Positions 7,473 through 61,162 of a stretch of 64,000 nt of DNA are shown here, in pieces. The position numbers were made by a program, and so were the translations under genes. The stretch spans positions 96,038,001 to 96,102,000 of the forward strand of contig CM097882.1 in the NCBI GenBank assembly GCA_044892505.1, read 5' to 3'. Position 1 is the first letter of the stretch; every line of letters starts with the position of its first letter. A model generated the notes under the pieces. The model did not search any database. It was not told the origin of the DNA and worked only from the letters and a program-made list of their open reading frames with translations. The stretch is from Schmidtea nova (Eukaryota).

Positions 7473-7550
<78 letters not shown>
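7473..7550. repeat. (GAT)n microsatellite
   Basis: Direct reading of about 26 units. Confidence 0.95.
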
Positions 7551-7551
<1 letters not shown>

Positions 7552-40477: not shown

Positions 40478-43436
40478 CAGGGATGCTTTCCTACCGGTTC
40501 GCACCGTTTCGTGCGAACCGTTAGGTGTAAATTCTATGGTTCGTGCGAACCGGCTATCAAAATAAGCGAAAAAAATAAATTATTTACTTTGGCAAAAAAA
40601 AATTATTTAAAAAAAATTATTAACCATTTGGTGCAAATTTATATAAACAATTTGAAAATTTAATCTAGTCTCCATTGCGATTCTAATTTTTTACTTTATA
40701 GAAATCTTTCAGTTAATTTAAAAAAAAATAAAAAAAATTTTAAATTTTATCAAGTTACCATAGATAGGTATATATGTAAAAGTTAAATCTATTTCTAATT
40801 TCTATTGAAAAAGTTTAATCTAAATATTTCATTTTGTCAGTTATTATTTGTTTTGTAAGGTAAGTTCAATTAACTATTTTCATGTTTTAAGTTAAATAAT
40901 TTATTTTTAAATACCTATTTTATTTTTTGAAGATGGAGAGACAAAATATGTTAACCACATATTTCTCGAAAAAAATAAGAGAGGAAACATCAGTAAGTAA
41001 TGATAGCTGGTCGACTATAACAGAGATAGAAGCAGTTTCAATAACTTTACAGGAACAAATACTAGAGATTACTAGTTCCCAAAATGAGGACAATAATAAT
41101 TTATCAAGCTGTTGGAATGCGAAACAGTTGAAGGAGTTTAAAATTAAATATGATGGGCTATTTGTCAGTAATCAGAAATTGGGATGTGAGTATTGTTTAA
41201 AAATGGAATCAAAACTAATATCTCAGGAATGGAAAAAATGTAAAGTTACGACATCGGGGAAAGACAAAATAGTGCAACAAGCATCTTTAAGGAAAAAAAT
41301 GAGTGAACATTTTGCATCAATAGCACACAAACTAGCTGTTGAACATGCCAAGATACTTGAAAAACAAACTTTTACATCATGCATCGATAAGATGAACGAG
41401 AAATTTATTAGTTCTACTACAAGAATCTTCAACACTGTTTACAGTCTAGCGAAAGGAAACCGTCCGTTTTCAGGCATAGAAAGTGTAATAGAGCTTCAAG
41501 TAAAAAACGGGTTGGACATGGGAACCGGACTTCATTCTCGACATAATGCAAGTAAGATAGTAGAGCATATCACGCAAGAAACTAAAAAAGAATTGTTTAT
41601 ATCAATTATTAAGAATAATTTAAAAATTTGAACTGTTATTGATGAAGCTTCCACCATTTCCAGTAAATCAACGCTTATAGTTTTCATCAAAGTAGAATCT
41701 TCTACAGTAGAATCTTCTGAAATATCCCCAATAATGTTCGTAGATATTGTGGAACTTGACGCACAAGATGCAAATACTATTTTTCAAAGTTTGTTGGGTG
41801 TATTGCTTGCTGTTGGATTTGATACAAATTATTTAAAACTGAATTTAATAGGATTCTGTTCTGATGGTGCTAGCGTAATGCTCGGTTGTAAATCTGGAGT
41901 CAGCGTACGAATAAAAGAGATGTTTCCAAATGTTATTATTTGACACTGTCTCAATCACCGTCTACAACTTGTTTTAGATGATTCCATAAACGATATCAAA
42001 CAGGTTAATCATTTTAAAGTTTTCATGGACAAAATATATTGTATTTTTCATCAATCTAATAAAAACCAAAAAGAACTGAATAATATTTCCCAGGAGCTTA
42101 GTTTGGATATAATTAAGATTGGAAGAGTGTTAGGACCAAAATGGGCTGCGTGCAGTCTAAGATCTGCTCTTGCTGTATGGCGGAGCTACCCTGCTTTGTA
42201 TACGTTGTTCTCTTCTAACCAAAAAATGTCTGGAATGGGAAAACGACTACAAAACAAATGTTTTCTAGTAGATTTAACTCTAATGATTGACATCCTACAG
42301 GAGTGCTCTCTACTATCTAATGCCCTTCAAGCTAGAAATATAAATGTTGCAAGGGGAGATCAACTGATTAGAAGAACAATTAACGCTTTTCAAATTCTCA
42401 AAGATCGTCGCGGTCATTACGAAAAAAAGTGGATGAAGTTATAAACTCTGAAGCATTCAAAAACATTATCTTCGTCGAAAACAGAATTTATGGAAACCTT
42501 CACAGAGATTCCCTTATTCACAGCATCATAAAAAATATGAAATTAAGATTGATGGATTGCTCTCATTTCGGATCAAATAGTAACAAAAACAATATTGATA
42601 ATAGCATTATTTATGAGCTAGCCAATTTGCTAGAGCCGAGCACATGGAAAATTGAAGATATTGTAGTTCCGTGGATAGAGGCCGAAGAGAATTTTGATAA
42701 ATTTTGAAAAGTTTTTAATTTTGATATCGATAAGAATGATTTCCGTGATTATGTAGAAAATATAATAAACAATGGCCATCAGCAAATTAGTAAAATTGCA
42801 GAAAACATTCAAAAAGCGAAAAATATGGTTAATACGGTTGCCGTTAGCAGTGCTGAAGCAGAACGAGGATTTTCATTGATGAACATCATAATTACTGATA
42901 TAAGAGCCAGATTAACAGTGCAGACAGTATCAAATTTGATGACATTAAACTTAGTTGGTCGTCCATTGGAAACTTGGAACGCAGTTCCCTATGTAAAAAC
43001 TTGGTTGAGGAACCATAACTCGGCAGATGATACCAGGGTTAAAAAATCTAAACCGAAAGAATATACTGAAAATCAATTAGCTATTTGGAAATATTTTAAA
43101 TAATATAATTACTTTATAACAATAATATTTACTAATATACAATTTTTTTCACAATTTTTTGTTATGTTCAGTTTTTTTTATGTAAATTTTGTATCTCTTG
43201 AAATGAATAGATAAAATAAAAGTTATTTTCACCTCGTTGAATTATTTTTTTATTCTCTTTTATCCTATTACATTATTGTTGCAAAGAATATGAACGATAG
43301 TTAAATATTCTTGACTTAGTCTGCTACTCTGACAAACAATAATATTTTGATGGAAATATTAATATTAAAAAAATAAAAAAAATTGTAAGAAAATATCACT
43401 GCTAACCGGTTGATAAATTTTGGGAAAGCATCCTTG
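40478..43436 (+). mobile_element. hAT DNA transposon (Tip100/ZNF862-like), full length
   Basis: TIR CAGGGATGCTTTCC/GGAAAGCATCCTTG (1 mismatch); perfect 8-bp TSD AAATAATC. Confidence 0.95.
40933..43103 (+). pseudogene. hAT transposase with in-frame stops and frameshifts; predicted 73-nt 5'UTR intron at 40860-40932
   Basis: [38 protein letters not shown] motifs. Confidence 0.92.
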
Positions 43437-45636: not shown

Positions 45637-46038
45637 TTATTGTTTTAAATAATCAATTACACCAGACAAGCATCCTTTATATGCACACATACTATGGTCT
45701 TTATATGGACATGAGATATTTTCTGGAACATCTTCAAATTCTTTAAAATTATATTTAATTAATCTCAATTTCGGGAAATATTTCTTCAAAACTTGCAACT
45801 TTTCATTATCTGTAACATAGAATATAGCTCCTTTATTTTCAATATCATCCATAATACATTTTGGACAAAAATAATCTTGTCCTTCAAACGATTCTATACG
45901 ATCAGGCCATAAAGATAAATCACTGTATATATAATAATGAGGTGTGAAGATATTATTGACATTCATAATACATAATTCCTTAATTGTTGTTCCTCCCATT
46001 TCATTATAACCATAAATATCGATAAAATAACAAGACAT
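45637..46038 (-). CDS. Maverick accessory protein, possibly a DEDD-like nuclease fold with a C-terminal Cys/His cluster
   Basis: Intact 133-aa ORF. N-terminal FIDIYGY...IKELCI resembles a DxE..KE first-strand pattern; C-terminal CPYKDHSMCAYKGC. TATAAAC 37 nt upstream. The fold is inference. Confidence 0.55.
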   Translation of the reverse strand: MSCYFIDIYGYNEMGGTTIKELCIMNVNNIFTPHYYIYSDLSLWPDRIESFEGQDYFCPKCIMDDIENKGAIFYVTDNEKLQVLKKYFPKLRLIKYNFKEFEDVPENISCPYKDHSMCAYKGCLSGVIDYLKQ

Positions 46039-46070
46039 TTTTTCAAAAAAAAATTATTAAAATAAATTGT

Positions 46071-46449
46071 TTATAACATTGATTTCAACCATGCAAGGCA
46101 ATGTTCACCACAAGTGATTGTTAAAGGATGTTGATACCGAATTATATTATACACAATAGGTTTACCAATAGTTTGAAGTTTTCGAACAAGTAAATTTGGA
46201 TAATAATATCCAAAGGGATCAAATACATGTATTCGATCTGGTTTCACGTAAACTGCAGTCCAATGTTCACCGCCCAATGTAGATGTCTGAGTATTTACAA
46301 TGATGGCTTGATTCATTTTCAAATAAGGTATTTTATCTAGCGAAAATACTCCAATAAATTGATTTCCCAATAGTTTTTTACCTTGATGTAATACCTGAAT
46401 AGAACTAATTAAAAATAAATAATTAATCAATTAAAAAATCTTACTCCAT
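46071..46449 (-). CDS. Adenain-like cysteine protease, spliced (ATG GA micro-exon; 40-nt intron at 46405-46444)
   Basis: GGEHW, HVFDPFG and CGEHC catalytic motifs; the spliced start reads MDSIQVLH. Confidence 0.92.
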
Positions 46450-46506
46450 GATGATAATAATAATAACTTATAATAACTTTGGTCATTTATACTATTTGAG
46501 CAGAGC

Positions 46507-47720
46507 TTAAACTAATAATGTTCGATTGGCAGTAATTTGAACTTCATTTTCAAAAACTCCATATATAACTACATGAACCGGTTCCTCAATAGGTTTTGCA
46601 AACTTTATATCGAGTCTTAAATTTTCGTTTTGAGGGATTTGGCTTTGATTCAAATCAAAATCGGGAGCCAGAACAAATGTAAAGAATGGATAACTAGATT
46701 TATCTAGATCAATACCACAATTCAAGTTTTTATCCAAATAACCTAGATTTCGGACAAGACTTTGCATATATGATGAACTAAAATTATCATTTTCAAAATC
46801 CTGGGTATGTTTCACGATAATCGGTATTTTTCGACAATGTTAATGAAGTCACATTAAAATGTTTGAATGTAGATGTTGACTCTGTATAAGATCCATTATA
46901 TTGATTTTCGGATTGAAAAGCCACAAGAATGAAATTAGGCATTCGTTTATCTCCAAATATTTGCTCCTTGTAAAATGACAATGCCCCTTTACCGATTGCA
47001 AACGATACGATTTCTTTTGATTTTATAGGATAAATTGCATGTTTTTTATTTAAACCAATTTGATGACCAGCCAATACTGAAGATTCACATCGAACTCTTC
47101 TTACCATTAATTTTGCATCAACTATTTGGATTATTGGTTTCCCAGCTGCCGATTTCAATGATAATGCAGAATCAGATCGCTTCAATCTAATATGTACATT
47201 AACTCCGGGAAGTAAGTATTTAGGTTGATCCATAAAATCCAGTTGTAATGATGAACACATGTTGAAAAGTTTCGATCCTTTGATCCATTTTTTCCTATCT
47301 TCAGCTGCACCATATCCCATTGGAGTAAGACATGTTTCTTTCGCATCATTCGCATAATTTAAAATAGTTTCGATTATTGCCTTGTGCGCATATGTATTGT
47401 TGCCACCCTCGATTTTTATATTATTAAATCCGAGAATTACATCTTTGAAAAGTGTATGAAACAAGTAATTATTAGGAACTACATCACTTGAATCACCTAG
47501 AGCCTTTTTATCTTTATCTACAACCTACGACAGTAATGGACAATAATGTATCGTTCAAATCCAAATATTCGGTTTGTGAACCATTAATGTAAAATTCAAC
47601 ATCATTTCTACTATCTGTAATAGAGTTCATTGGGAACACATCTTCAAACACCCCATATTCAATAACTGCTTGAGGTGACGGTCGATCAAAAAGACATAAT
47701 TCAGATTTACCGCAAATCAT
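46507..47720 (-). pseudogene. Major capsid protein (double jelly-roll), frameshifted into three pieces
   Basis: KSELCLFDRP, TEYLDL, QPKYLLPGV, FTFVLAPDFDL; colinear with 59056-60282. Confidence 0.93.
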
Positions 47721-48100
47721 TCTTCAAATATAGTTTCATGACCTTTCATTCGTTTGTTTATACGCTTTCGTTTACGTCTTGGTCCTACTGGTACAGATTC
47801 TGGTTCCTTAATTTTTGTAAACATATTTGTAATTGAAGGAAGCATTTGTGTTACAGCAGGTATAGCTTTATTAACTGCAGCCAAAGCATTGGTTTTCAAT
47901 GACGGTAATATTTTATTATCTTTCATGATAACGTCCTTGGCAGTATTCATTCCGAAATTACCTAGTCGTCTAAGAATTGGAAGTGCAAATCTCCCAATAG
48001 TTTTCAACCAACTTGATCCATACTGTTTACCGACAAAATACGGTAATTCACCACCAGTTTGGCTATCACTGTACATAGAAACTATATCGGGATTACTCAT
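47717..48100 (-). CDS. Conserved small Maverick protein upstream of the major capsid
   Basis: QTGGELPYFVGKQYG..WLKTIGRFALPILRRLG; ortholog of 58652-59059. Confidence 0.85.
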   Translation of the reverse strand: MSNPDIVSMYSDSQTGGELPYFVGKQYGSSWLKTIGRFALPILRRLGNFGMNTAKDVIMKDNKILPSLKTNALAAVNKAIPAVTQMLPSITNMFTKIKEPESVPVGPRRKRKRINKRMKGHETIFEE

Positions 48101-48129
48101 CGTTTTTTCGAAAATGTAGAGTTAAGTGA

Positions 48130-48410
48130 GTTTTTGAATCTTTTGGAAATTTTATTAGTCATCCGCTGTCATCCCTGATATTTATTTCTATATTGTTTAT
48201 ACAGGATGTTGAAACAGATAAATACATTGGGTTTTCTACTTGTATTTGAACAATTTCATCTTGTTCGTATTTTTCGATCCATACCGATTTTAGTAAAGGA
48301 ACCAAGGAATCACCAACAATTATGAGTTCGATAATGTTAGTATACACGAATAATTGCTGATGAAGTTTAGATAATTTCGGTTGACGAATACCAGAAATGA
48401 TATTTTTATC
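48130..48410 (-). pseudogene. 3' fragment of a minor capsid gene joined in frame to the integrase
   Basis: KLHQQLFVYTNIIE..VGD..VPLLKSVW..NPMYL..IEINIRDDSG. Confidence 0.85.
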
Positions 48411-49353
48411 GATTCTAAATATTGTCGGTGGAGGAATAACTTGTAATTCTTGTAGGTAGAATTTGCCGCTGATTATATTGTTATCAGAGTCACAAATAGT
48501 ATACATGACAGGATTCTGCACTGTGTTGACTTTCGATATTTGATATATCTCATCACTCCAATTATTATCAAAATTTTTAATGAATGGCGATGCACTAATC
48601 TTGCTAATTCGAACATGATCACCAATTTTATATTTTGGTTTCTTTATTTTCGTATCACTCAAAATATTTTCAGTATCTACTACTTCTACTGGTTTCCTGC
48701 TATTTATACCCCGATGAGCACTATGATTATAACTGTGAATCATTTCAGGTAAAACATTAATCCAGGTTTTATTGCCTTTAAAAACAAAGTATTTTTTCAA
48801 TCGATCACGTAAAGTTCGATTAAATCTTTCGACATGAGCTGCTTTGAATTGCGAGAATACCGAATAATGATTTATTCTCTTGATAACTTTCTTGACTTTA
48901 CTGTTGTAAAATTCCTTTCCTAAAAAATATTAAATATATATATATAAATTTATATTTAAATTTACCCAAATCGGTTTGTAAATTAGTTGGCCGATCCTTT
49001 TTCATCATTGTCTTGATAGCGATTGCCATGTCATTAGCAGATTTAGATTTTACTCCAATTGCTCGAGCAAATCTACTGTAAACATCAATACATGTTAAAA
49101 TATACTTGTATCCCTTGTTAATAGCAGAATACGGAATCATTTCCATCAAATCCATTTGCCACAAATCATTGATTCTATATGTTTTATATGCTCGAGTTGG
49201 AAACCGTTTCAACATCGGCTTGTTTAGACTGTATGCAAGTTGCCCCGATAACCAACTTTGTGTCTGTTGTTTCGACTTCTGTGCTTTTTTCCTTAGCTTT
49301 TCGACTCCACCGAAACCGGCGTCATCTTTTTAGTTCGTCCAGATCTTCTACAT
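48411..49353 (-). pseudogene. Retroviral-like (rve) integrase with a 46-nt intron (48920-48965), early stops, chromodomain deleted
   Basis: WQMDL, QTDLG|KEFYN (restored by splicing), HVERFNRTL. Confidence 0.92.
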
Positions 49354-49408
49354 TACAACAAGAAGATTTAAAGTTTAAATTTAAATTAGGTAATGATTGA
49401 CCCATTGT

Positions 49409-49908
49409 TTATGACTTTCTTTTTCCCAATAAACCAGTACCTCCCAATAATGATAATGCTAATGGTAACAATGCTGCGATAAAACCACCTTGTTGTTTAT
49501 ATATTATTTTGCGCATAAGTTTTCTATTTTTTGTGTTTACTAGCGATAATGGTTTTTTATGTTTGTTCATAACACGTCGATTAGATGGAGTTAGATTCAT
49601 TTTACCTCGACTTTAATTAAAATAGCGAGTAAATCATCGATGACGTAATTAGGAAACGATTGAAGAATACCCATTCTTCTAACGGAGGGGGCTTTAAGTA
49701 ATGCATTAAAAAACGGTAAACTACGATTATGTAATAATGGTTTAGCATTAGATTTCAAATTAATTTGATTAGTTTTGGGAATATTATCTATAATTATTTT
49801 CTTGGATCTTGATTTCTTTCTTGATTTCTTTGTTGATTTCTTTATAATTAGTTTCTTTGTTCTAGCCTTTATCAATGGCTCAAACTTTACTCGAGATTTC
49901 ATTAACAT
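49409..49908 (-). pseudogene. Basic Lys-rich peptide fused to a homolog of 55122-55451, with one frameshift at about 49600
   Basis: RSLPFFNAL..AP...IDDLL and SLVNTKNR...KIIYKQQGGF match the element B ORF; a KKSTKKSRKK N-terminal tract is present. Confidence 0.75.
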
Positions 49909-49938
49909 TATTATGATTGCAAACAGAATTAACTTTGT

Positions 49939-50553
49939 TTAAAAAACCATGGCTCCTTCAGTGTTAAAAATATCAGTTCTAACTCGTAAATCATCACTGC
50001 ATTGTTGAGTAAAATCCAGGAAAATATATCCATGAGGAGATTTTGTAGCATCTTGAAAGGCTTCAATCAAAAAGTAACGATTTGAAGGATAAGCTTGTCT
50101 TGCCAGAAAATCAATAACTGTTGCATCTCTAGGATTTTTAAACACAACAAGATATTGAACATTTAAATTACGGGTTCGATGACTACCGCCCTGATGAAAT
50201 AAATTCTGAGTTATAAAAATAACAGTAACACCTTTATGTCGACTGATTTTCGTAAATAAGTTATTGAAATCCTTTTCTTTATTTGCTTCTTGATACAAGT
50301 CATCAATGATAATCACATCACCTTGTTTTAATCTAGATGAACAGTTTTTATTGAAACCTTTTATGATTGTCATTTTTATTTTACAAAACTGATCTTGAGT
50401 CATTCCGCTTTCGTCGTCAGCACCCCTATGCCAATAAATATTATTGAATTTTGATTTGAATAATTTCGATTGCAATAATTTACAAACAAATAAAGTTTTT
50501 CCACTCCCGCTCGGACCAACAATTTGAAACACTGCATCATTTCTTAATTCCAT
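49939..50553 (-). CDS. A32/FtsK-like DNA packaging ATPase
   Basis: Walker A GPSGSGKT, Walker B IIIDD, SRH, FITQNLF; the C-terminal few codons are altered. Confidence 0.93.
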   Translation of the reverse strand: MELRNDAVFQIVGPSGSGKTLFVCKLLQSKLFKSKFNNIYWHRGADDESGMTQDQFCKIKMTIIKGFNKNCSSRLKQGDVIIIDDLYQEANKEKDFNNLFTKISRHKGVTVIFITQNLFHQGGSHRTRNLNVQYLVVFKNPRDATVIDFLARQAYPSNRYFLIEAFQDATKSPHGYIFLDFTQQCSDDLRVRTDIFNTEGAMVF

Positions 50554-50645
50554 ATTTCAAAATTATATTTAATTAATATTATTGTTTATATTTGTTTTAA
50601 ATACTGGTTCTCAAAGTAATTTTTCATTTAAAAATATTTTCAGTA

Positions 50646-51113
50646 ATGATTAGAAACATTAATTACAAGGGTAAGACATATGTATCACACATGAAATTTC
50701 CAAATGGAAAACCCCAGCAAATTGTAGATAGAAGTGGAAAATACCCAATAATATACTTTAAAACAGGAAGATATAGAATAATGGGATGCAGGGAATTTAT
50801 TAGTGACGAACAAGTTGAGTTTTACGATTTAAAAATACAATCGATAACTGTAACTGCGGATTTAGGATTTATTTGTAATTTGAATGAATTATCTAAATTA
50901 ATACCATGTGTTTACGAGCCAGAAATATTTCCAGCTTTGAGATATATCAAATATAATCCCATGTGTGTAAATATATTTGCAAGGGGGAAATTAGTCATAT
51001 TAGGATTAAAAAACAAAGACTATTCAACTATAGTTGATGATATTATTTACGATATAAAATCAATTATAGAAGATAAAGCCTTTGTTGATTTCATACTAAC
51101 ATGTGACTCATGA
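50646..51113 (+). CDS. TATA-binding protein (TBP)-like protein, 155 aa, intact copy
   Basis: Second TBP repeat: LKIQSITVTADLG...VYEPEIFPALRY...VNIFARGKLVILG (cf. YEPELFPGL..LIFVSGKVVLTG). Shortened first repeat: IRNINY...KFPNG...IIYFKTGRYRIMG. Recognised from motifs only. Confidence 0.82.
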   Translation: MIRNINYKGKTYVSHMKFPNGKPQQIVDRSGKYPIIYFKTGRYRIMGCREFISDEQVEFYDLKIQSITVTADLGFICNLNELSKLIPCVYEPEIFPALRYIKYNPMCVNIFARGKLVILGLKNKDYSTIVDDIIYDIKSIIEDKAFVDFILTCDS

Positions 51114-51376
51114 CTGCAATATCGATGCAGTAGAAATGCACGATTCTGATTGGTTCTGTGTGTATTTCGAGAATAAAGACATGTTGTGCATGCTTGAATC
51201 TGATTGGTTCATTATGTGTGTTTCAAATCATGTGTGTTTCTTTCATATATATACTATGAACAATCTGACATAGTTTATATCTACAATTATGTCTCTAACA
51301 CAAACTTTGATTAAAAGCCGTAAGGATTTTAATTATTTATTATTCATAATTAATATTTTTTTTATTTAGAAAAATA

Positions 51377-51790
51377 ATGAATGTAATATACAGAAAATTG
51401 GAGGAGCTTTTCCCGAACCTCATGCCGGCTCTCGTGTACACAGCTCCGGAGATGTTCCCGTACAAGATCATGATCTTGACGGGAATCGATATTAACCAGA
51501 TCGTCCTGGACCATATGACGAATCAAAATACGGATATACCCGCTGTGGCAGAGCACATTCTATGTGCATACCAATGTGGAAGCTGTGTCGAACGTATCCG
51601 GCAATTCAATATATGGGTTTTGAGAAACTCGCTCAAATTATTCGATACCGAACAACAACAACTGGAAAAAGTTGAGGAGGAGGAGGAGGAGCAAATAAAG
51701 GAAACCTGTGTGTTTCTTTCATATATATACTATGAACAATCTGACATAGTTTATATCTACAATTATGTCTCTAACACAAACTTTGATTAA
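51377..51790 (+). CDS. Unknown Maverick protein downstream of the TBP-like gene; C-terminus probably created by the duplication junction
   Basis: RKLEELFP.L...L.Y.APE...KI...TGI.I.Q..H shared with 53332-53720; preceded by a GT..AG 5'UTR intron-like segment. Confidence 0.65.
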   Translation: MNVIYRKLEELFPNLMPALVYTAPEMFPYKIMILTGIDINQIVLDHMTNQNTDIPAVAEHILCAYQCGSCVERIRQFNIWVLRNSLKLFDTEQQQLEKVEEEEEEQIKETCVFLSYIYYEQSDIVYIYNYVSNTNFD

Positions 51791-51852
51791 AAGCCGTAAG
51801 GATTTTAATTATTTATTATTCATAATTAATATTTTTTTTATTTAGAAAAATA

Positions 51853-52266
51853 ATGAATGTAATATACAGAAAATTGGAGGAGCTTTTCCCGAACCTCATG
51901 CCGGCTCTCGTGTACACAGCTCCGGAGATGTTCCCGTACAAGATCATGATCTTGACGGGAATCGATATTAACCAGATCGTCCTGGACCATATGACGAATC
52001 AAAATACGGATATACCCGCTGTGGCAGAGCACATTCTATGTGCATACCAATGTGGAAGCTGTGTCGAACGTATCCGGCAATTCAATATATGGGTTTTGAG
52101 AAACTCGCTCAAATTATTCGATACCGAACAACAACAACTGGAAAAAGTTGAGGAGGAGGAGGAGGAGCCAATAAAGGAAACCTGTGTGTTTCTTTCATAT
52201 ATATACTATGAACAATCTGACATAGTTTATATCTACAATTATGTCTCTAACACAAACTTTGATTAA
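51853..52266 (+). CDS. Second tandem copy of the same unknown protein
   Basis: Part of the 476-bp duplication. Confidence 0.55.
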   Translation: MNVIYRKLEELFPNLMPALVYTAPEMFPYKIMILTGIDINQIVLDHMTNQNTDIPAVAEHILCAYQCGSCVERIRQFNIWVLRNSLKLFDTEQQQLEKVEEEEEEPIKETCVFLSYIYYEQSDIVYIYNYVSNTNFD

Positions 52267-52763
52267 AAGCCGTAAGGATTTTAATTATTTATTATTCATA
52301 ATTAATATTTTTTTTATTTAGAAAAATAATGAATGTAATATACAGAAAATTGGAGGAGCTTTTCCCGAACCTCATGCCGGCTCTCGTGTACACAGCTCCG
52401 GAGATGTTCCCGTACAAGATCATGATATTGATATTTTCATCACTGCAGTATTCGTAAAAAGTGGAATAAATATGTTAAAAATTTGTGTATGAATCTTTTC
52501 TGTTGATAAAAAGATATTTTTGTATCGCCATGTATTATTTATAAACTTTGTTTTATTTATAATATCGATTTAATTTTTAAATTTTTTAAATACATTAATT
52601 TATTTTAAATCCATTAATTTCAGCATGCATCTAATAATAATAATAATAATAATAATTTTTTTACCCCCCCCCCCAAAAAAAAAATTTTTTTGTTTAAATG
52701 AAGTGAATTTTTTAAATTTTTTATTTTGTTTAAATGAAGTGAATTTTTTAATTTTAATTATTT

Positions 52764-53331: not shown

Positions 53332-53720
53332 TTATAAATTATAAATGTCGTTATAATATGCTTTACGCATTTCTGACATTAAGATATGCACCGAATGATC
53401 TCTTTTAAAATCATGACAGCATGCACATCTGTTTACACAGGATACTCTTAGTGAATCATTGCAAACTATGCAATTTTCAACGCACTTGACTCCAGCTCCT
53501 AGCACCATATCATAGTGAATCTCGAGCAATTGTTCGATATTGATTCCAGTAAACTTGTATATCTTATGAACCAATAACTCTGGTGCACAGTAATCCAAAG
53601 AATCTTTTATTTTTGGATATAATTCTTGAATTTTCTTCAGGACCACTTCAAATAAATAAGATAAATTAAAAATAATAAAAATAATATAGTTAATTAAAAA
53701 TAATACTTACTTTTAGACAT
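53332..53720 (-). CDS. Unknown Cys-rich Maverick protein, spliced (exon 53720-53711, 65-nt intron, exon 53645-53332)
   Basis: ATGTCTAAAA|GTAAGT...TTGAAG|TG gives MSKMVLKKIQEL in frame; CVENCIVC..SCVNRCACCH cluster; homolog of 51377-51790. Confidence 0.7.
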
Positions 53721-53722
53721 TT

Positions 53723-54228
53723 TCAAAAATATGGATTTGTAAAATAACAATTTATTGAAACAAAATTAAATAATAAATCGAGATATTTTTCATCAATTAA
53801 TTCATTATTGATTAATGAATTAATATAATTTTTAATTTCATTAACTTGATTAAAATAATCCAATGTTTTAATTCCTAATATTACAACTATTCCACTTGAA
53901 AAAATATTAATGCAAATTGGGTTATAATTTATTAATCTCAAAGCTGGAAATATTTCGGGTTCGTACCAGCACTCTGTTTTATTTTGCAATTCGTATAAAT
54001 TTATGGATTTACCCATATCCAATGTTATAGTGATCGATTGAATTTTTAAATCAGAAATTTTATATTTCAAATCATCTGGTTTTAACGGTTGCTTACAACC
54101 CATTACACGGCATTTTCCCGATCTGAAAAATAATATAGGGTACTTCCCGCTCCTTGCTGGGGTTTTCCAACAGGAAATATCATGTTTGGAACTAAACACT
54201 TGCCCTTATAATTAATATTACTTATCAT
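53723..54228 (-). pseudogene. TBP-like gene of element B, with one frameshift near codon 26
   Basis: True start MISNINYKGKC (ATG 54228) matches 50646; then PILFFRSGKCRVMG, LKIQSITITLDMG, WYEPEIFPALR, INIFSSGIVVILG. Confidence 0.82.
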
Positions 54229-54246
54229 TTTTATAAATTGAATAAA

Positions 54247-54253
54247 TATAAAC
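54247..54253 (+). promoter_or_regulatory. TATAAAC promoter motif upstream of the ATPase (representative of a recurrent motif)
   Basis: 38 nt before the ATG; the same motif lies 37 nt before the element A ATPase (50584-50590, minus) and before most other morphogenesis genes. Confidence 0.65.
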
Positions 54254-54284
54254 AATATTAAATTAAATAATTAATTAAATAAAA

Positions 54285-54908
54285 ATGGAATTAAGAAATG
54301 ATGCAGTTTATCAAATAGTGGGCTCGAGTGGTAGTGGAAAAACATTATTTGTATGTAAATTGTTGCAATTAAAAATGTTTAATTCAAAATTCAATAAAAT
54401 TTACTGGCATAGAGGAGCTGATGAAGAACATGGACTGACTCAAGATCAATTCTGTAAATTAAAAATGACAATTATAAAAGGGTTTGATAAAAACTGGTCA
54501 TCTAGATTACGTCAAGGCGATGTTATAATTATCGATGATTTGTACCAAGAAGCAAATAAAGAAAAAGATTTTAATAATTTATTCACAAAAATTAGTAGAC
54601 ATTTAGGAGTTACTGTAATTTTCATTACTCAAAATTTATTTCATCAAGGTGGTAGTCACAGAACTCGTAATTTAAATGTTCAATACTTGGTTATATTCAA
54701 AAACCCAAGAGATGCTACAATTATTGATTTTCTAGCAAGACAAGCTTACCCTAATGATAGAAAATTCTTAATTAATTCATTTCAAGATGCTACTTAAGTT
54801 CCTCATGGATATTTATTCTTTGATTTTACTCAACAATGTCCTGATGATTTACGCATCCGAACGGATATATTTAACGAAAATGGAGTCACGGTTTATAAAC
54901 AAAATTGA
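54285..54908 (+). pseudogene. A32/FtsK-like packaging ATPase with a premature TAA at 54795-54797
   Basis: GSSGSGKT, IIIDD, SRH, FITQNLF. The frame continues after the stop (VPHGYLFFDF..DDLRIRTDIF), matching element A. Confidence 0.93.
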
Positions 54909-54929
54909 AAATAAATAAAAGAAATAATA

Positions 54930-55091
54930 ATGTCATTTAAAAAAGTAATTGTCAAGTTAAATAAAGAAGCTATTCAAAAAGCTGATCAAAAACTGATTAA
55001 AAAAGTTGATCAAAAATCTAAATTAGTTAAAAAAGTTACCAAAAAGATTGGTAAAAGAAAGAAACAAGTAAAGAAGTGGATAAAATTATAA
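54930..55091 (+). CDS. 53-aa Lys-rich small ORF, candidate DNA-condensing core protein (not in the ORF track)
   Basis: MSFKKVIVKL...GKRKKQVKKWIKL; 20 Lys; TATAAAC 36 nt upstream; positional equivalent of the basic tract at 49.8-49.9 kb. Confidence 0.6.
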   Translation: MSFKKVIVKLNKEAIQKADQKLIKKVDQKSKLVKKVTKKIGKRKKQVKKWIKL

Positions 55092-55121
55092 ACGAAATAA
55101 ATATACACAAAAATTTTAATC

Positions 55122-55451
55122 ATGAAATTTGAACGTAGTTTACCGTATTTTAATGCTTTGGTTAAAGCTCCAACAAATAAGCGAATGACAATTTTACAAG
55201 CTTTCCCACCCTTTGTTATTGATGATTTACTTGAAATCGTTTTTAATATTGTTCATGGTAATGTAAATATTAGTAGATCAAAGAAAATTGAACTACAAAA
55301 ACATAAAAATTCACTTTTGTCATTAGTGAATACCAAAAATAGAAATCTTATACGAAAAATAATATATAAACAAAAGGGTGGGTTTCTCGGTACATTAATT
55401 CCAATAGTATTATCAGCAATAAGCGCAATCTCATCTTTAAGAAATGGGTAA
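55122..55451 (+). CDS. Conserved small Maverick protein ending in QKGG-FLGTLIPIVL (candidate protease-matured, membrane-active virion protein)
   Basis: Intact ORF with an ortholog in element A; the GG followed by an amphipathic helix pattern is common in Polinton small proteins. Confidence 0.8.
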   Translation: MKFERSLPYFNALVKAPTNKRMTILQAFPPFVIDDLLEIVFNIVHGNVNISRSKKIELQKHKNSLLSLVNTKNRNLIRKIIYKQKGGFLGTLIPIVLSAISAISSLRNG

Positions 55452-55513
55452 TAAAATTTCTGAACCTAATAAACATAATATAGATTTAAATATTTTAACA
55501 AATTGTTGTATTA

Positions 55514-56601
55514 ATGAAGAAAATCATGAAGAATATAAAAACGATATGGACAAACCCAAAAGATCCCGATGGTTTTGGTTCAGTCAAAAAATTGGCAAAA
55601 AGAATAAAAAGTTCAAAGAATGAAACTCAGAAATGGTTATCTGATCAATTGGCATATAGTTTAAATAAAGCAATGTTGAAAAGATTTCCTACACGGAAAT
55701 ATAAAACTTTTGGGGGTAACGATTTATGGCAAATGGATTTGATGGAAATGATTCCTTATTCTAAAATTAACAAGGGTTACAAATATATTTTGACTTGTAT
55801 TGATGTTTTTAGCCGTTATGCACGAGCTATTCCAACAAAAACTAAATCTGCTAATGAAATGGCTGAGGCTATTGAATCTTTATTTAAAGATGGGAAGCCA
55901 CGTAATTTACAAACTGATTTGGGTAAGAAATTAAATTAAATTTTTTTAATTATTTAATTTTAATTTAGGAAGAGTTTTATAACAGCAAAGTAAAAGAAGT
56001 GATCAAAGGAATCAATCATTATTCTGTATTTTCTCAATTCAAAGCTGCTCATGTTGAAAGATTTAATCGAACTTTAAGAGATCGTTTGAAAAAGTATTTT
56101 GTGTATCAAGGTAACAAAACATGGATAAATGTTTTACCGAAAATTATTTCCAGTTACAATCGTTCACCGCATTCGGGATTAAATAAAATGAAACCTATCG
56201 ATGTATATTCAAATAATAATTTTGATGGATGGATAAAAGATAGATTAAAATCAATTAATAAAAAACCGAAATATAAAGTAGGCGATTATATGAGAATGAG
56301 TAAAATCAGTGCTTCTCCCTTCATCAAAAATTTTGATAGTAATTGGAGTGATGAAGTATATCAAATCTCAAATGTTGATACTAATCAAAATCCAGTCATG
56401 TATACTATTTCCGATCATGAAAACAATGTAATCGAGGGTAAATTCTACGAACAAGAACTTCAAGTTATTCCAGCTCCCACAGTTTTAAGAATTCAAAAGA
56501 TTTTAAAAACCAAAACTGATGGGAAATATAAACAATATTACGTTAAATGGCATGGCTATGAAACTCCAAGTTGGATATCTGAAAAACAATTGATTAAATA
56601 A
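55514..56601 (+). CDS. Retroviral-like integrase with a C-terminal chromodomain; 46-nt intron at 55923-55968 and an apparent 2-nt deletion just after it
   Basis: WQMDL, QTDLG, HVERFNRTL; chromodomain QYYVKWHGYETPSW. The intron matches element A in position and length. Confidence 0.92.
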
Positions 56602-56606
56602 ATATT

Positions 56607-57644
56607 ATGAAAGAAAACCAGTTTTATATGATTTTACCTAGCAATGCATGTCCTCTTATTTATCCTAATAATGAAGCTAGTAATTTTAATGTAGAATTTC
56701 AAAATCCGATTTATTTAAATAGTAATGACGATTGGGAAGTTGCTTTGATTGATTTTACTTTTGTGTATAATTTGTTTCCGTATTATAGTAATTCTTTTAT
56801 TCAAATTGAAACTAAAAGAGAAATTCAAGAAATTAGTTATTTGAGAATTAATAATCAAAATAAAACAATTCAAGTTATAGTTTCTCAACCTAGTTCAGAC
56901 ACTGATGTATTTATTGAAAAATATAATTATTTAGTGATTGTTTGCCCACATGTTCTCTTTAAAATTACATTTCCAGATCTTGAACATGCAAAAAGTTTTG
57001 GATTGGATAATATATCAATTACAAGTGAAAATGACCATTGTCGTTTAAAATTACCAAAATTCAGGAATGATAATAGTCTTGAACAATTTGGAATTTTAAT
57101 AAATTATGAAATTAAAACTGTTAATGATTATTATTTTCAAGATGAATTATTCATAACGTCATTACCAGAATTGCAAGGATATTTAATGAAAATTAATCTA
57201 TCTCCATTTAAAGAATTGAAACTTGTCAATAATGAATTGGTTAAAATTATTCTTCAGGATAATATTTCAAAAATTACTTTTGATTCAAATTTAACCAAAT
57301 CTCTGGGTCTACAGAAACAAACATATACTGATACCGAAATAATTGGTGTAAAAATCCCCAAAATTTTACAACTTCATCAGCAAATGTTCATTTACAGCAA
57401 CATTATTGAACCAGTAACTGTTGGAGATGTACGAGTTCCCCTCCTAAAATCAATTTGGATCAAGAAATATGACCAAGGCGAAGTTGTACAAATTGAAATA
57501 AAGAATCCAATGTATTTGCCGATTTCAACATCAACTATAAACAACATTGAAATCTATATTCGTGATGACAGTGGAAAATTAATTAAATTTTCAAAAGATA
57601 CAAAGACTCATTTGACTCTACATTTTCGTAAAATAAATGATTAA
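56607..57644 (+). CDS. Minor capsid (penton-like) protein 1
   Basis: FYMILPSNA..WEVAL N-terminus and NPMYLP..IEIYIRDDSG..TLHFRK C-terminus around a variable insert. Confidence 0.88.
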   Translation: MKENQFYMILPSNACPLIYPNNEASNFNVEFQNPIYLNSNDDWEVALIDFTFVYNLFPYYSNSFIQIETKREIQEISYLRINNQNKTIQVIVSQPSSDTDVFIEKYNYLVIVCPHVLFKITFPDLEHAKSFGLDNISITSENDHCRLKLPKFRNDNSLEQFGILINYEIKTVNDYYFQDELFITSLPELQGYLMKINLSPFKELKLVNNELVKIILQDNISKITFDSNLTKSLGLQKQTYTDTEIIGVKIPKILQLHQQMFIYSNIIEPVTVGDVRVPLLKSIWIKKYDQGEVVQIEIKNPMYLPISTSTINNIEIYIRDDSGKLIKFSKDTKTHLTLHFRKIND

Positions 57645-58659
57645 AAAAGATTTTTATGTTAATTTACCAAGCAATTCTTGCCCATTGACACATCCTAATA
57701 ATAAAGCTGGAAAATTCAATGTTGAATATCAAAACCCAATTTATTTCGATGGTAGTTGGGAAGTTGCTCTTATGGATTTTACTTTTGTGTACAATGAATT
57801 TCCGTTTTATAATAGTTCAAGTATAAAATTTATTAGAAATGAATTACATTCTAGTTATGAATATTTCAATTTTAACCAACAAAAGAAAGAATATGATATA
57901 AGTCACGATTCTAATTATTATTTAATGTATATTGATGGCAATATTTTAAATGTAAATTGTAAATATTTTCCATTTCAAATAATATTTGATAGTGTTGATG
58001 AAGCTAAAAAATTAGGGTTTCAAGAAAAAGCTGTGACATTTAATGATGAATTAAACAAAATTAAAATTCCAGCAAATGAAAATAAAACACTTGATGATAC
58101 TATACGGTTTACTATAACTTATACTTTTCCTGTTGAATACACAGATAATTTCAAAGACGATTTAATAATAAATAATCTTACTGAATTATCTGATCAAATT
58201 GAAACTTTTTATCCACATCCATTTAAAGTGATTGATATTAAAGAAGGAAAATTAATTAAATTAATTCTTGAAGATGATATAACTAGTGTAAAATTTAGTA
58301 GGAATTTAGCAAATTCGTTAGGATTAGTTGAACAAGAATTCTTTGACAAAATTATTGATGGCGTATATTATCCACAAGTTTTAAAACTTCATCAACAAAT
58401 GTTCATCTATACGAATATTATTCAACCAATTCTTGTTGGTGACATGTCAGTTCCCCTATTGAAATGTGTTTGGGTTGAAAAACATAAAAAGGGTGATTTG
58501 GTTCAAATTGTTGAGAAAAATCCAATGTATTTACCGGTCAGTTTCACATATATAAACAATATAGAAATCAATATTCGTGACGACAGTGGAAAAATAGTTA
58601 AATTTGCAAAAGAAGACAAAACTTACTTGACATTACATTTCCGTAAAATAAATGAATAA
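57637..58659 (+). CDS. Minor capsid (penton-like) protein 2, tandem paralog
   Basis: Same terminal motifs (FYVNLPSNS, WEVAL, IEINIRDDSG) with a divergent centre. Confidence 0.88.
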   Translation: MIKKDFYVNLPSNSCPLTHPNNKAGKFNVEYQNPIYFDGSWEVALMDFTFVYNEFPFYNSSSIKFIRNELHSSYEYFNFNQQKKEYDISHDSNYYLMYIDGNILNVNCKYFPFQIIFDSVDEAKKLGFQEKAVTFNDELNKIKIPANENKTLDDTIRFTITYTFPVEYTDNFKDDLIINNLTELSDQIETFYPHPFKVIDIKEGKLIKLILEDDITSVKFSRNLANSLGLVEQEFFDKIIDGVYYPQVLKLHQQMFIYTNIIQPILVGDMSVPLLKCVWVEKHKKGDLVQIVEKNPMYLPVSFTYINNIEINIRDDSGKIVKFAKEDKTYLTLHFRKINE

Positions 58660-59059
58660 TCCAGATATTATCAGTTTCTATAGCAACAGCCAATCAGGTG
58701 GAGAATTACCGTATTTTGTAGGTAAGCAATATGGAACTGGTTGGTTGAAAACGATAGGTAGATTTGCATTACCAATTCTTAGACGTATTGGAAATTTTGG
58801 TATGAAAACTGCCAATGATGTGTTAAATAATAATTCAAAGATTTTACCTGCACTAAAATCCAATGCCATTTCTGAAATTAAAGACTCATTGCCCGATGTG
58901 ATTCATCATTTGCCACAAGTAATTAGTAAAGTGACTGATGTGTTTAACGAAAATAAAACTGAAGATAAACAAAATGGCGGAATTCTTAAACGAAAAAGAA
59001 ATATGAAGAAACATATAAACAAAAGAATGAAAGGATATGGAACAATATTTGAAAAATGA
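58652..59059 (+). CDS. Conserved small Maverick protein (QSGG-ELPYF, amphipathic helix, basic tail)
   Basis: Intact ORF; orthologs in elements A and C; overlaps both neighbouring genes. Confidence 0.85.
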   Translation: MNNPDIISFYSNSQSGGELPYFVGKQYGTGWLKTIGRFALPILRRIGNFGMKTANDVLNNNSKILPALKSNAISEIKDSLPDVIHHLPQVISKVTDVFNENKTEDKQNGGILKRKRNMKKHINKRMKGYGTIFEK

Positions 59060-60282: not shown

Positions 60283-60333
60283 TTGAAAATTATTGGTTTA
60301 ATATAAACTAATTTTAATTAATTAATAAAGTAA

Positions 60334-60712
60334 ATGAAGTAAGATTTATTTTAAATAATTAAATTTTATTGATTTTAGTTCAATTCAGGTAGATCAGATT
60401 GCTAGAAAATTAATTGGATCGGAATTTCTAGGAGTTTTTCCTCTAGATAAAATACCGTATATAGATGTGAATAAAGCATTGATTGTCAATACTCAATCAT
60501 CAAACCTCAAAGGTGAACATTGGCTTGCAATTTATAATAAACCCGATAAAATATACGTGTTTGATCCAATGGGATTTTATTATCCACCGATATTGTTGAA
60601 AAAATTATCGTCAATGTTAAAACCAATAGAATATAACAGAATTCGATATCAAAATCCAATGACAAAAACCTGTGGGCAACATTGTTTAGCTTGGCTAAAA
60701 TATATGAAATAA
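60334..60712 (+). CDS. Adenain-like cysteine protease, spliced (ATG AA micro-exon; 40-nt intron at 60339-60378)
   Basis: The spliced start reads MNSIQVDQIARKLIG..GVFPLD; KGEHW, VFDPMG and CGQHC catalytic motifs. Confidence 0.93.
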
Positions 60713-60829
60713 AATTTTTATTATAAAACGACTTTTATTATAAAACGACTTTTTCTATTTTTGATATTCACTAATACAAAAGTGAATTTTTATGTTTGAA
60801 TTTGTTAAATTATAGTTGAAAATAATTTT

Positions 60830-61035
60830 AATATTGTAAAATATTTAATTAATTTTAAATTACATATTGTAAAATATTTAATTTTAAATTACATATTGTA
60901 AAATATTTAATTAATTTTAAATTACATATTGTAAAATATTTAATTTTAAATTACATATTGTAAAATATTTAATTAATTTTAAATTACATATTGTAAAATA
61001 TTTAATTTTAAATTAAATATTGTAAAATATTTAAA
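60830..61035. repeat. AT-rich tandem repeat, 29-33 bp unit, about 7 copies
   Basis: Repeated AATTTTAAATTACATATTGTAAAATATTT(AATT). Confidence 0.9.
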
Positions 61036-61162
61036 TTAAATTATATTTAAAATAATTTCGTTTAAATAAACGACATTTTTAACAACAAGCCAACTTAAGT
61101 AAGTAAGTTTAATTTTTTATGAATATTTTTTAATTTATTTTTTTTTTACAGATTTTTAAATA

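Follow-up and report, generated by a model that had tools for sequence, protein, structure and literature searches.

We analyzed a 64,000-nt stretch of Schmidtea nova DNA (GCA_044892505.1, contig CM097882.1, positions 96,038,001 to 96,102,000 of the forward strand; hereafter the window), in which an intact gene at 50646-51113 (+) encodes a 155-aa protein with a TATA-binding protein (TBP) domain. Two further copies are present. Copy B (53726-54228, -) has one frameshift and no in-frame stop, whereas copy C (8169-8631, -) is decayed, with one frameshift and several in-frame stops. Copies A and B are divergent from an A32/FtsK-type packaging ATPase, across 92 bp (50554-50645) and 56 bp (54229-54284), respectively. 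The ATPase of element A (49939-50553, -; 204 aa) is intact, while that of element B (54285-54902, +) has one premature stop. Hence, the observation made in the sequence-only reading holds: there are three related genes, one intact and two frameshifted, and in two elements the gene is head-to-head with the ATPase.

Element A (45649-52477, -) is an endogenous, decayed copy with no PolB. On its minus strand we found a p164 homolog (45649-46038), an adenain-type protease (46071-46430), the major capsid protein MCP (46510-47720, 2 frameshifts), p135 (47717-48100), a p345 remnant (48105-48410, about three quarters deleted, 1 stop), an integrase (48159-49353, 1 frameshift and 2 stops), a protein-X-like small gene (49409-49908, 1 frameshift and 1 stop), and the ATPase. 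The plus strand carries the TBP-like gene and p137, tandemly repeated at 51226-52477. Element B (53332-64000, +) is an endogenous copy that runs off the window. It comprises p104 (53332-53646, -), the TBP-like gene (-), the ATPase, a protein-X-like small gene (55122-55451), an rve plus chromo integrase (55514-56601, 1 frameshift), the paralogs p345 (56607-57644) and p340 (57637-58659), p135 (58652-59059), a double jelly-roll MCP (59056-60282), an adenain-type protease (60377-60700), and PolB (62481-63998, cut by the window end). Fragments of a further copy lie at 14366-15475 (-; MCP, p135, and p345 pieces, 88-98% identical at the DNA level to element B) and at 22272-23190 (-). The rest of the window holds only piggyBac-like and hAT-like transposase ORFs.

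These elements are Polinton/Maverick (adintovirus-like), and they also encode a protein-X-like core protein. The ATPases match Pfam Pox_A32 at 27.6 (element A) and 29.2 bits against a cut-off of 22.8, and the integrase matches rve at 38.6 bits against a cut-off of 32.6, with a chromo domain below its threshold; rve plus Chromo occur in relatives. The protease (46074-46430, -) scores 24.0 bits for Peptidase_C5 against a cut-off of 21.3, although only the N-terminal third of the profile is matched; relatives score 28-30 bits. The protein-primed PolB was identified through relatives. The ORF at 2685-6317 (+), upstream of copy C, hits only Endonuclease_7 in Pfam, but 5 of the 7 homologs aligned with it hit DNA_pol_B_2 (best 8.8e-28), 7/7 hit Endonuclease_7, and it is 33-54% identical to PolB genes linked to the TBP-like gene. 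The precomputed PolB hit is also present in four of the metagenomic loci (labelled L086, L087, L089, and L090). Searches of PDB sequences with PolB, the capsid protein, and p345, singly or as profiles, found nothing. The capsid was identified by fold: for structure prediction an alignment was built from database homologs, and the AF2 model of 59056-60279 (pLDDT 89.6, pTM 0.88) matches iridovirus, PBCV-1, mavirus, Sputnik, and ASFV capsid proteins in Foldseek at E 2.5e-16 to 1e-12. We found no end-to-end inverted repeats on the contigs of relatives, none of which is shown to be complete, and the window elements are truncated or run off the window, so that the question of terminal inverted repeats and target-site duplications is left undecided. 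Adenovirus-like core and protease genes, and a Bcl-2 gene in close relatives, hint at an animal host; Starrett et al. also report related PolB in fungi such as Rhizophagus, and our analysis itself did not assign a host.

A TBP-like protein with a shortened first repeat

The lack of any TBP profile or fold hit had been set out in advance as a result that would count against the identification, and both kinds of hit were obtained. Residues 62-133 of copy A match Pfam TBP (PF00352) at 47.3 bits, and the ORF of copy B scores 56.7 bits, against a cut-off of 22.9; all 8 homologs retrieved through a word index also carry PF00352. The exact protein is not on record. A phmmer search of PDB sequences returned 35 TBPs, the best being that of M. 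jannaschii (3.6e-16), which is far beyond chance, and the family profile hits 35 PDB TBP sequences down to 1.6e-22. A confident AlphaFold model (pLDDT 89, pTM 0.78) matches 44 solved TBP chains in Foldseek over both lobes (E 4e-9 to 3e-6, about 170 aligned columns, TMq 0.61-0.69), with no other fold below E 0.07.

The protein does not have two complete repeats. Only one is detectable by sequence in copy A, although a two-lobed saddle is still predicted. Lobe 2 (residues 57-153) is a complete TBP repeat, with 5 strands and 2 helices (S1-H1-S2-S3-S4-S5-H2). Lobe 1 (residues 1-56) keeps 4 strands, S1 and S3-S5, and lacks both helices. An internal profile comparison with hhalign aligned residues 23-51 of the N-lobe to residues 96-124 of the C-lobe with a probability of 93.6%, and alignment to a canonical two-repeat TBP shows gaps where H2 and the S2-S3 region lie. 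The geometry of lobe 1 rests on a predicted model, whose coordinates were not inspected residue by residue. There is no N-terminal extension; Met1 is shared by 96% of 74 family members.

One detail of the sequence-only reading fails, namely that Phe is present at all four DNA-intercalating positions. Phe38, Phe95, and Phe111 are 99-100% conserved and align to canonical kinking positions. The first proposed Phe (Phe18, in the FPxG string) is present in only 56% of members and is off register, since the canonical position falls on Lys22 or Ile26, depending on the alignment. Among the 74 members, Glu91, Pro92, Glu93, Pro96, Ala97, Asn4, Pro23, Arg44, and Gly47 are also 95-100% conserved, and Asn6 is 92% conserved.

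Conservation and linkage of the gene across elements

We searched metagenomic sequences and found 144 relatives and about 94 clusters at 50% identity; 94 of 156 cluster representatives have the 1.5-repeat architecture. The gene is linked to the ATPase, integrase, capsid, and PolB across ATPase identities of 34-86%, and the linkage recurs in about 100 loci whose ATPase and capsid proteins have diverged to 25-40% identity. It had been proposed that the idea would fall if most elements of the family lacked the gene. Sampling by the ATPase instead, we found it in 6 of 6 informative lineages. One more ATPase-anchored locus (L099) shows no TBP-like gene, but its contig ends exactly where the arrangement of locus L096 places the gene, and it was counted as uninformative. 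The head-to-head arrangement is a minority one (8 loci). The commonest is co-directional, with the TBP-like gene upstream of the ATPase (29 loci), and in another subgroup the gene lies beyond the capsid and protease genes (8 loci).

A dN/dS near 1 was the other outcome named beforehand as contrary to function. Independent pairs with dS of 0.06-0.9 gave omega values of 0.05-0.57, mostly 0.1-0.25, which indicates purifying selection. Hence, this is a conserved core gene of a large clade of adintovirus-like elements.

The origin of the gene is less clear, and the description of it as a captured TBP is without an identifiable donor. The nearest cellular TBPs share about 25-35% identity over one lobe, and archaeal TBPs score best. 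These are score ranks only, as no labelled phylogeny with cellular, archaeal, and giant-virus TBPs was built, with only about 80 alignable residues. A scan of IMG/VR with the ATPase found no relative, and one with the TBP-like gene found a single contig (L003), which proved to be a giant-virus fragment with a canonical two-repeat TBP (182 aa) and not a family member.

A strand-specific motif upstream of late genes

We then searched for shared motifs upstream of the element genes. TATAAAC is the top 7-mer, with 56 observed against 4.9 expected, and the 8-mer YATAAACA is about 11-fold enriched. After de-duplication, sense-strand YATAAAC was found upstream of the ATPase in 29/34 cases, MCP in 16/16, p135 in 16/16, p345 in 22/27, the small gene in 13/17, and the integrase in 14/23, but upstream of the TBP-like gene in only 3/55. 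There were 0 antisense occurrences upstream of the late genes. The pattern replicates in loci not chosen by the TBP-like gene and holds in lineages with ATPase below 45% identity (12/13). TATAAA is followed by C in 83 of 103 cases upstream of late genes, with C at 15% of bases, against 3 of 26 upstream of the TBP-like gene. The motif has C at position 1 in 28% of sites. No strong shared motif was found upstream of the TBP-like gene, the best being TCATAAT (13 of 56) and TGATTGG (10 of 56).

In the window, all 13 sites inside elements A and B lie on the gene strand, and sites elsewhere are at chance level. The six sites of element A (46068-50590, -) start at 46068, 47755, 48194, 49406, 49494, and 50583; the last (50583-50590) is in the divergent intergenic region, 37 nt upstream of the ATPase start codon. 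The seven sites of element B (54247-59021, +) start at 54247, 54894, 55365, 56527, 57536, 58551, and 59014. They lie 38 nt before the start codon of the ATPase (54247-54254, in the divergent intergenic region), 149 before the integrase, 80 before p345, 101 before p340, 101 before p135, and 42 before the MCP. The motif typically starts 34-45 nt before the ATG (mode 34-38 nt for the ATPase), but the spacing is not uniform, since for p135 and the second p345 paralog it lies about 100 nt upstream, inside the preceding gene.

A proposed element-borne TBP and its possible promoters

The interpretation given in the sequence-only reading, a captured TBP acting as a late-gene transcription factor or as an antagonist of host TBP, is thus only partly supported: the lineage does encode its own TBP-like factor and the linkage is not accidental, the late-gene role gains indirect support from the motif, and the donor is not identified. 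Our favored explanation, to which we give a probability of about 0.6, is that the gene encodes an early-expressed minimal TBP that reads a variant TATA box on late promoters. The analysis itself establishes the TBP-type fold with one complete repeat and a half-repeat (as predicted by the model), the status of conserved core gene under purifying selection, and the strand-specific YATAAACA motif upstream of the packaging ATPase, core protein, integrase, capsid-module, and capsid genes. The rest is inference. In this view, the TBP-like gene would be transcribed first from an ordinary host-type promoter, and its product would bind YATAAACA through the concave sheet. The canonical lobe 2 would read the canonical 5' half (YATA), and the remodelled lobe 1, with one kinking Phe instead of two, the non-canonical 3' half (AACA), including the C at position 7. 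It would nucleate a host RNA polymerase II initiation complex through the near-invariant lobe-2 stirrup (Glu91, Pro92, Glu93, Phe95, Pro96, Ala97; 95-99% conserved), which in cellular TBP is the TFIIB contact. Loss of the lobe-1 helices would remove the surfaces that host regulators of TBP use, giving the element a private late-promoter switch. The arguments on TFIIB contact and evasion of regulators rest on textbook TBP structural knowledge and were not tested here, there are no binding, expression, or transcription-start data, and the link between protein and motif is a correlation within one clade. No sister clade lacking the gene could be sampled, and it is thus not shown that the motif tracks the gene. 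TATAAA is also the core of the host TATA box, and host TBP might read the motif. In the window the system is a relic, since copy A is intact but both elements have broken genes.

Several virus-encoded and cellular proteins can be compared with this one. Relative to cellular TBPs (archaeal TBP, eukaryotic TBP, and TBP-related factors), lobe 2 has both kinking Phe and the acidic stirrup block and the whole model superposes on TBP cores, but the protein has about 155 aa instead of about 180 for a core, lobe 1 lacks H1 and H2 and has a shortened S2-S3 region, three Phe are conserved instead of four, and the gene is carried by a mobile virus-like element. The herpesviral TBP mimics (KSHV ORF24, EBV BcRF1, HCMV UL87) read a variant TATT box on late promoters and depend on host RNA polymerase II (PMC7498053, PMC4893493, PMC12529657), which matches the logic inferred here. 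The resemblance is functional and not familial: there is no detectable sequence relationship, and fold matches are marginal (E 0.009-0.03). These proteins are large, act within a six-protein complex, and contact Pol II directly, whereas the protein here is a bare 155-aa saddle with a TFIIB-type stirrup. TBP-like proteins of giant viruses (Nucleocytoviricota), such as those of Heterosigma akashiwo virus, Terrestrivirus, and the asfarvirus B263R group, are the best hits in the viral structure library (E 1e-7 to 1e-3). They are longer two-lobed proteins (about 180-500 aa) that serve a viral RNA polymerase in the cytoplasm, while the elements here encode no RNA polymerase.

The gene is not wholly undescribed. 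Starrett et al. 2021 (Virus Evolution, Fig. 5; PMC8502044) label a TBP gene in MELD viruses with adintovirus-like PolB, and the legend lists TBP and TRAF genes. This is probably the same or a related gene, as two of our loci (L084 and L086) have a MATH/TRAF gene beside the TBP-like gene, although the identity of the gene in that figure with this family is unverified. Prior mention is limited to this label, without architecture, distribution, selection, or promoter analysis, and the motif is new here.

Polintons/Mavericks and adintoviruses encode no RNA polymerase and are generally assumed to depend on host promoter recognition. A conserved element-encoded TBP paired with a dedicated promoter motif would mean that they impose their own temporal program, with the factor made early and the virion genes late, as herpesviruses and giant viruses do by other means. 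In its strongest and more tentative form, this would be a self-contained, orthogonal late-promoter system, in which a 1.5-repeat TBP reads a private 8-bp TATA variant and recruits host RNA polymerase II through TFIIB while being invisible to the host's TBP regulators. It would be the smallest natural TBP saddle and the first basal transcription factor assigned to this virus class, which is widely regarded as ancestral to several eukaryotic DNA virus groups. A natural minimal saddle with one lobe devoid of helices is useful for understanding what TBP needs in order to bend DNA and recruit TFIIB. The motif (sense strand, about 35-45 nt before the ATG) provides a simple signature to annotate genes and their orientation in this very common but almost unannotated clade, and the gene is a marker of the clade in metagenomes, where it is currently auto-labelled as cellular TBP.

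Other explanations seem unlikely. The best of them is that host TBP reads YATAAACA as an ordinary TATA box, while the element's protein acts as a competitor or decoy that occupies host TATA boxes or ties up TFIIB, damping host or element transcription, for example to time expression or favor latency. The motif does contain the canonical TATAAA core, the loss of the lobe-1 helices that cellular partners use is the kind of change expected in a dominant-negative form, and the TFIIB-type stirrup is the most conserved block. However, the frequent C at position 7 and the C at position 1 fit a canonical TBP poorly, the DNA-face residues are as conserved as the stirrup, and the association of the motif with late genes, with few occurrences at the gene's own promoter, is the pattern of an activator and its targets. 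It is more doubtful still that the fold serves another DNA transaction, such as marking the genome for the packaging ATPase or binding terminal or origin sequences for protein-primed replication, with YATAAACA as a packaging or architectural signal. The gene usually sits next to the ATPase, and the motif is repeated many times on a single strand, as some packaging repeats are, but it precedes individual genes at a narrow distance from start codons, which is promoter-like, the gene lies far from the ATPase in one subgroup, and every top sequence and fold hit is a transcription TBP. Finally, that the gene is a passenger with no role of its own fits the broken genes of elements A and B and the broken copies B and C, but is contradicted for the family by the low omega values, by near-invariant functional residues, and by retention across lineages whose ATPase is only 34-41% identical and through three different genomic positions.

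Sequence and predicted fold of the TBP-like protein

The ORF at 50646-51113 (+) is an uninterrupted reading frame of 155 aa, and the observation made in the sequence-only reading holds in its main points. Residues 62-133 match the Pfam TBP profile (PF00352) at 47.3 bits, for a gathering score of 22.9, and the longest ORF of copy B scores 56.7 bits. We searched the PDB sequences with phmmer and retrieved 35 TBP sequences and essentially nothing else, the best being the TBP of Methanocaldococcus jannaschii (3.6e-16). The same stretch of the query aligns to both repeats of each TBP. Hence, sequence alone detects one repeat, and the family profile behaves in the same way. Copy B (53726-54228, minus strand) has one frameshift and no in-frame stop, whereas copy C (8169-8631, minus strand) has one frameshift and several in-frame stops. 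In copies A and B the gene is divergent from an A32-type ATPase (Pox_A32 at 27.6 and 29.2 bits, for a cut-off of 22.8), from which it is separated by 92 bp and 56 bp, respectively.

To study the fold of the protein, we built an AlphaFold2 model from ten family sequences. The model is confident (mean pLDDT of 89, pTM of 0.78), although its coordinates were not inspected. Lobe 2 (approximately residues 57-153) has the full TBP repeat, i.e., a strand, a helix, four strands, and a long helix. Lobe 1 (residues 1-56) has four strands (2-10, 25-28, 35-38, and 42-48) and no helix. A Foldseek search against the PDB gave 44 TBP chains with E values between 4e-9 and 3e-6, about 170 aligned columns, and TM-scores of 0.61-0.69 on the query, while the next fold appeared only at an E value of 0.07. 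Among predicted viral structures, the best hits were TBP-like proteins of giant viruses (E values of 1e-7 to 1e-3), and relatives of the herpesviral TBP mimics appeared only marginally (0.009-0.03). An internal profile comparison aligned residues 23-51 of the N-lobe with residues 96-124 of the C-lobe (probability of 93.6%, E value of 2e-7). Hence, lobe 1 is a true half-repeat covering strands S3-S5. For comparison, we aligned the family profile to a canonical two-repeat TBP of 182 aa (Pfam score of 124 bits). The latter is encoded in L003, a 44.7-kb IMG/VR contig that is a giant-virus fragment also carrying ribonucleotide reductase, a family-B polymerase, and a heliorhodopsin. The profile aligns to this TBP over its whole length, with a 13-residue gap where helix H2 of repeat 1 lies and a 5-residue gap in the S2-S3 region.

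The sequence-only reading had proposed that Phe is present at positions matching all four DNA-intercalating Phe of TBP. We found three of the four. In 74 family members, Phe38, Phe95, and Phe111 are 99-100% conserved and align to canonical kinking positions. In contrast, the first Phe of that proposal (Phe18) is present in 56% of the members and is out of register in both alignments. The canonical position falls on Lys22 in the internal alignment of the lobes or on Ile26 in the alignment to the two-repeat TBP, and neither is a conserved Phe. The other residues conserved at 92-100% are Asn4, Asn6, Pro23, Arg44, Met46, Gly47, Gln65, Glu91, Pro92, Glu93, Pro96, Ala97, Pro105, Asn109, Gly114, and Gly120, whereas Gln25 is conserved at 86%.

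The elements carrying the gene and their surroundings

The elements encoding these proteins are Polinton/Maverick elements of the adintovirus-like kind. The 1210-aa ORF at 2685-6317 and its relatives are protein-primed family-B polymerases (PolB). The ORF of the window hits only Endonuclease_7 in Pfam, but DNA_pol_B_2 is found in 5 of the 7 aligned homologs (best E value of 8.8e-28). The PolB assignment rests only on Pfam. All 7 carry an Endonuclease-VII-like zinc-finger insert, which in the window ORF lies approximately at residues 523-557, and some relatives also have N-terminal C2H2 zinc fingers. The integrase is of the rve type, with a chromo domain below its Pfam threshold. The 408-aa protein at 59056-60282 gives a confident model (pLDDT of 89.6, pTM of 0.88) that matches the double jelly-roll capsid proteins of iridovirus, PBCV-1, mavirus, Sputnik, and ASFV with E values of 2.5e-16 to 1e-12. 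The region 46074-46430 (minus strand) passes the cut-off of Peptidase_C5 (adenain), and the 109-aa gene after the ATPase just passes that of Adeno_PX. An unknown gene of about 340 aa, between the integrase and p135, is tandemly duplicated, with two paralogs in element B (56607-58659) and three in L090 (6353-9377), one of the loci of relatives. It has no hit in Pfam or among PDB sequences and may be a penton or another virion protein.

Element A, at about 45.6-52.5 kb, has its morphogenesis genes on the minus strand, whereas element B runs on the plus strand from 53.3 kb to the end of the window. The two lie head to head at 70-81% DNA identity, with assembly gaps between them. Element A has an intact TBP-like gene, ATPase, p135, and protease ORF. 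Its capsid gene has 2 frameshifts, its integrase 1 frameshift and 2 stops, and its small core gene 1 frameshift and 1 stop, while about three quarters of p345 is deleted and there is no PolB. Element B has 1 frameshift in the TBP-like gene, 1 premature stop in the ATPase, and 1 frameshift in the integrase. Its other genes are open, with PolB cut by the end of the window. Both are decaying endogenous copies. The breaks are given as counts with outer bounds only, and no repaired, consensus, or joined sequence was built. Directly downstream of copy A of the TBP-like gene (51226-52477), a 476-bp unit is repeated about 2.6 times (99% and 86% identity), which duplicates a 137-aa ORF. Its homolog in element B is the 104-aa ORF at 53332-53646. 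Both resemble a 150-aa gene lying beyond the TBP-like gene in L090 and a 137-aa gene in another locus (L001), without any Pfam hit. Between the protease and PolB of element B (60812-61360) there are tandem repeats with periods of about 30 bp and 15 bp, and part of the region reads as a repetitive ORF of 119 aa (61163-61522).

Elsewhere in the window, the PolB at 2.7-6.3 kb is followed by copy C. A long trinucleotide run at 7436-7595 reads as poly-Asp, poly-His, or poly-Met depending on the frame, and is a simple repeat, not a gene. Other transposon genes are present at 20494-21879, 29992-31125, and 40927-43103, namely a hAT-type dimerisation domain (identified with Pfam), piggyBac-like ORFs, and a second hAT-like set (the last two judged by eye). 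The window is a transposon-rich region with no clear host gene. Fragments of further copies of the elements, at 14366-15475 and 22272-23190, are 88-98% identical in DNA to element B. This is much closer than A is to B, so this genome has had several waves of insertion.

Distribution and conservation of the gene in the lineage

To assess whether the gene is a regular part of the lineage, we searched for its homologs in several ways. A word-indexed search found 8 short homologs, all with PF00352. A metagenome scan found 144 relatives, of which 80 loci were kept. An exhaustive profile search of 1.84 billion cluster representatives found 3125 TBP-domain proteins, with short full-length matches filling the top ranks. 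Of the 156 proteins examined, 94 have one full repeat plus the half-repeat, 30 have one repeat only (mostly fragments), and 25 are canonical proteins with two or more repeats. No labelled phylogeny against cellular, archaeal, and giant-virus TBPs was built. We then searched the loci with the element proteins of the window using tblastn, and found the gene linked to the ATPase in 30 loci. In the long contigs, it is linked to the whole set of small core gene, integrase, p345, p135, capsid, and PolB. The identity of the ATPase to that of the window ranges from 34% to 86%. Three arrangements exist: the gene is co-directional with the ATPase and upstream of it (29 loci), divergent from it as in the window (8 loci), or beyond the capsid and protease genes (8 loci).

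As an unbiased test, we took seven ATPase homologs on long contigs, chosen without regard to the TBP-like gene. Six lineages carry it, one of them as a decayed copy. The seventh contig (L099) ends exactly where its subgroup would place the gene and is therefore uninformative. We also computed dN/dS by the method of Nei and Gojobori for independent pairs with dS of 0.06-0.9, and obtained values of 0.05-0.57, mostly 0.1-0.25. The sequence-only reading had stated in advance three outcomes that would count against it: no match to TBP, a dN/dS near 1, and the absence of the gene from most copies. None was observed. The first two are contradicted outright, whereas the third was examined only in the 6 informative lineages, without any sister clade lacking the gene, and did not occur there.

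In a lineage whose ATPase is 73% identical to that of the window, a Bcl-2 family gene (Pfam Bcl-2 at 40.2 bits, for a cut-off of 31.4) sits between the TBP-like gene and the ATPase (L090, positions 3563-3940; also in the loci L091 and L092). This gene in close relatives, together with the adenovirus-like virion genes, hints at an animal host, although the literature also reports related PolB in fungi. The contigs of this lineage, of about 16 kb, rank as NODE_2 or NODE_3 in at least three assemblies, and the ATPase is indexed on contigs of 10-20 kb in 12 collection blocks, so they may correspond to a circulating virus rather than to an integrated copy.

A TATA-like motif upstream of the late genes

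Both elements A and B have TATAAACA 37-38 nt before the start codon of the ATPase. We counted 7-mers de novo in 150 upstream regions of element genes, and TATAAAC came first (56 observed, 4.9 expected), followed by ATAAACA and CATAAAC. After removing near-identical regions, sense-strand YATAAAC within 150 nt upstream was found for 29/34 ATPase, 16/16 capsid, 16/16 p135, 22/27 p345, 13/17 small core, and 14/23 integrase genes. For the TBP-like gene, the figure is 3/55. There were zero antisense occurrences upstream of the late genes. For the ATPase, the motif starts mostly 34-38 nt before the ATG. The pattern replicates in the ATPase-anchored loci and holds in the most divergent lineages, with 12/13 for ATPases below 45% identity and 7/7 for the capsid. 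In the window, YATAAACA occurs 28 times for 16.5 expected. All 13 sites inside elements A and B are on the gene strand, while the remainder are scattered on both strands at about chance level. Position 8 is A in 89% of the sites. Upstream of late genes, TATAAA is followed by C in 83 of 103 cases, even if C makes up only 15% of the bases, whereas upstream of the TBP-like gene this occurs in 3 of 26 cases.

What the analysis establishes is a protein with a TBP fold and a remodelled lobe 1, conserved as a core gene, and an 8-bp TATA-like motif with a non-canonical 3' half that marks the late genes and not the gene itself. The mechanism is our inference from the textbook structures of the TBP-DNA and TBP-TFIIB complexes and was not tested here. 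There are no binding, expression, or start-site data. In this view, the canonical lobe 2 would read the canonical 5' half (YATA), and the altered lobe 1, with a single Phe, would read the altered 3' half (AACA). The near-invariant stirrup of lobe 2 would recruit host TFIIB and so RNA polymerase II, and the loss of the lobe-1 helices would remove docking surfaces for host TBP regulators. The factor would be made first from a host-type promoter and then switch on the virion and integrase genes. The interpretation given in the sequence-only reading, a captured TBP acting as a late-gene transcription factor or as an antagonist of host TBP, is partly supported. The closest functional precedent is the TBP mimic of beta- and gamma-herpesviruses, which reads a TATT box on late promoters (PMC7498053, PMC4893493, PMC12529657). 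This is an analogy, not a homology.

Full-text literature searches found no analysis of a TBP gene in Polintons, Mavericks, polinton-like viruses, or adintoviruses. There is a "TBP" label in Fig. 5 of Starrett et al. 2021 (PMC8502044), for MELD viruses with adintovirus-like PolB, and the same legend lists TRAF. In two of our loci, MATH/TRAF-domain genes lie immediately upstream of the TBP-like gene (L084, positions 5476-6447, and L086, positions 7923-8912). These may be element-borne accessory genes matching the TRAF label, and the lineage may thus be the same. IMG pipelines already name some members automatically as "TATA-box binding protein". While virus-encoded TBP-like factors were already known, we regard as new the 1.5-repeat architecture, the breadth and selection of the family, and the paired YATAAACA motif.

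The upstream regions of the TBP-like gene itself show no strong shared motif. Two strings recur weakly among the loci, TCATAAT(T) in about a quarter of the regions and TGATTGG (an inverted CCAAT box) in about a sixth. These could be the host-type early promoter of the TBP-like gene.
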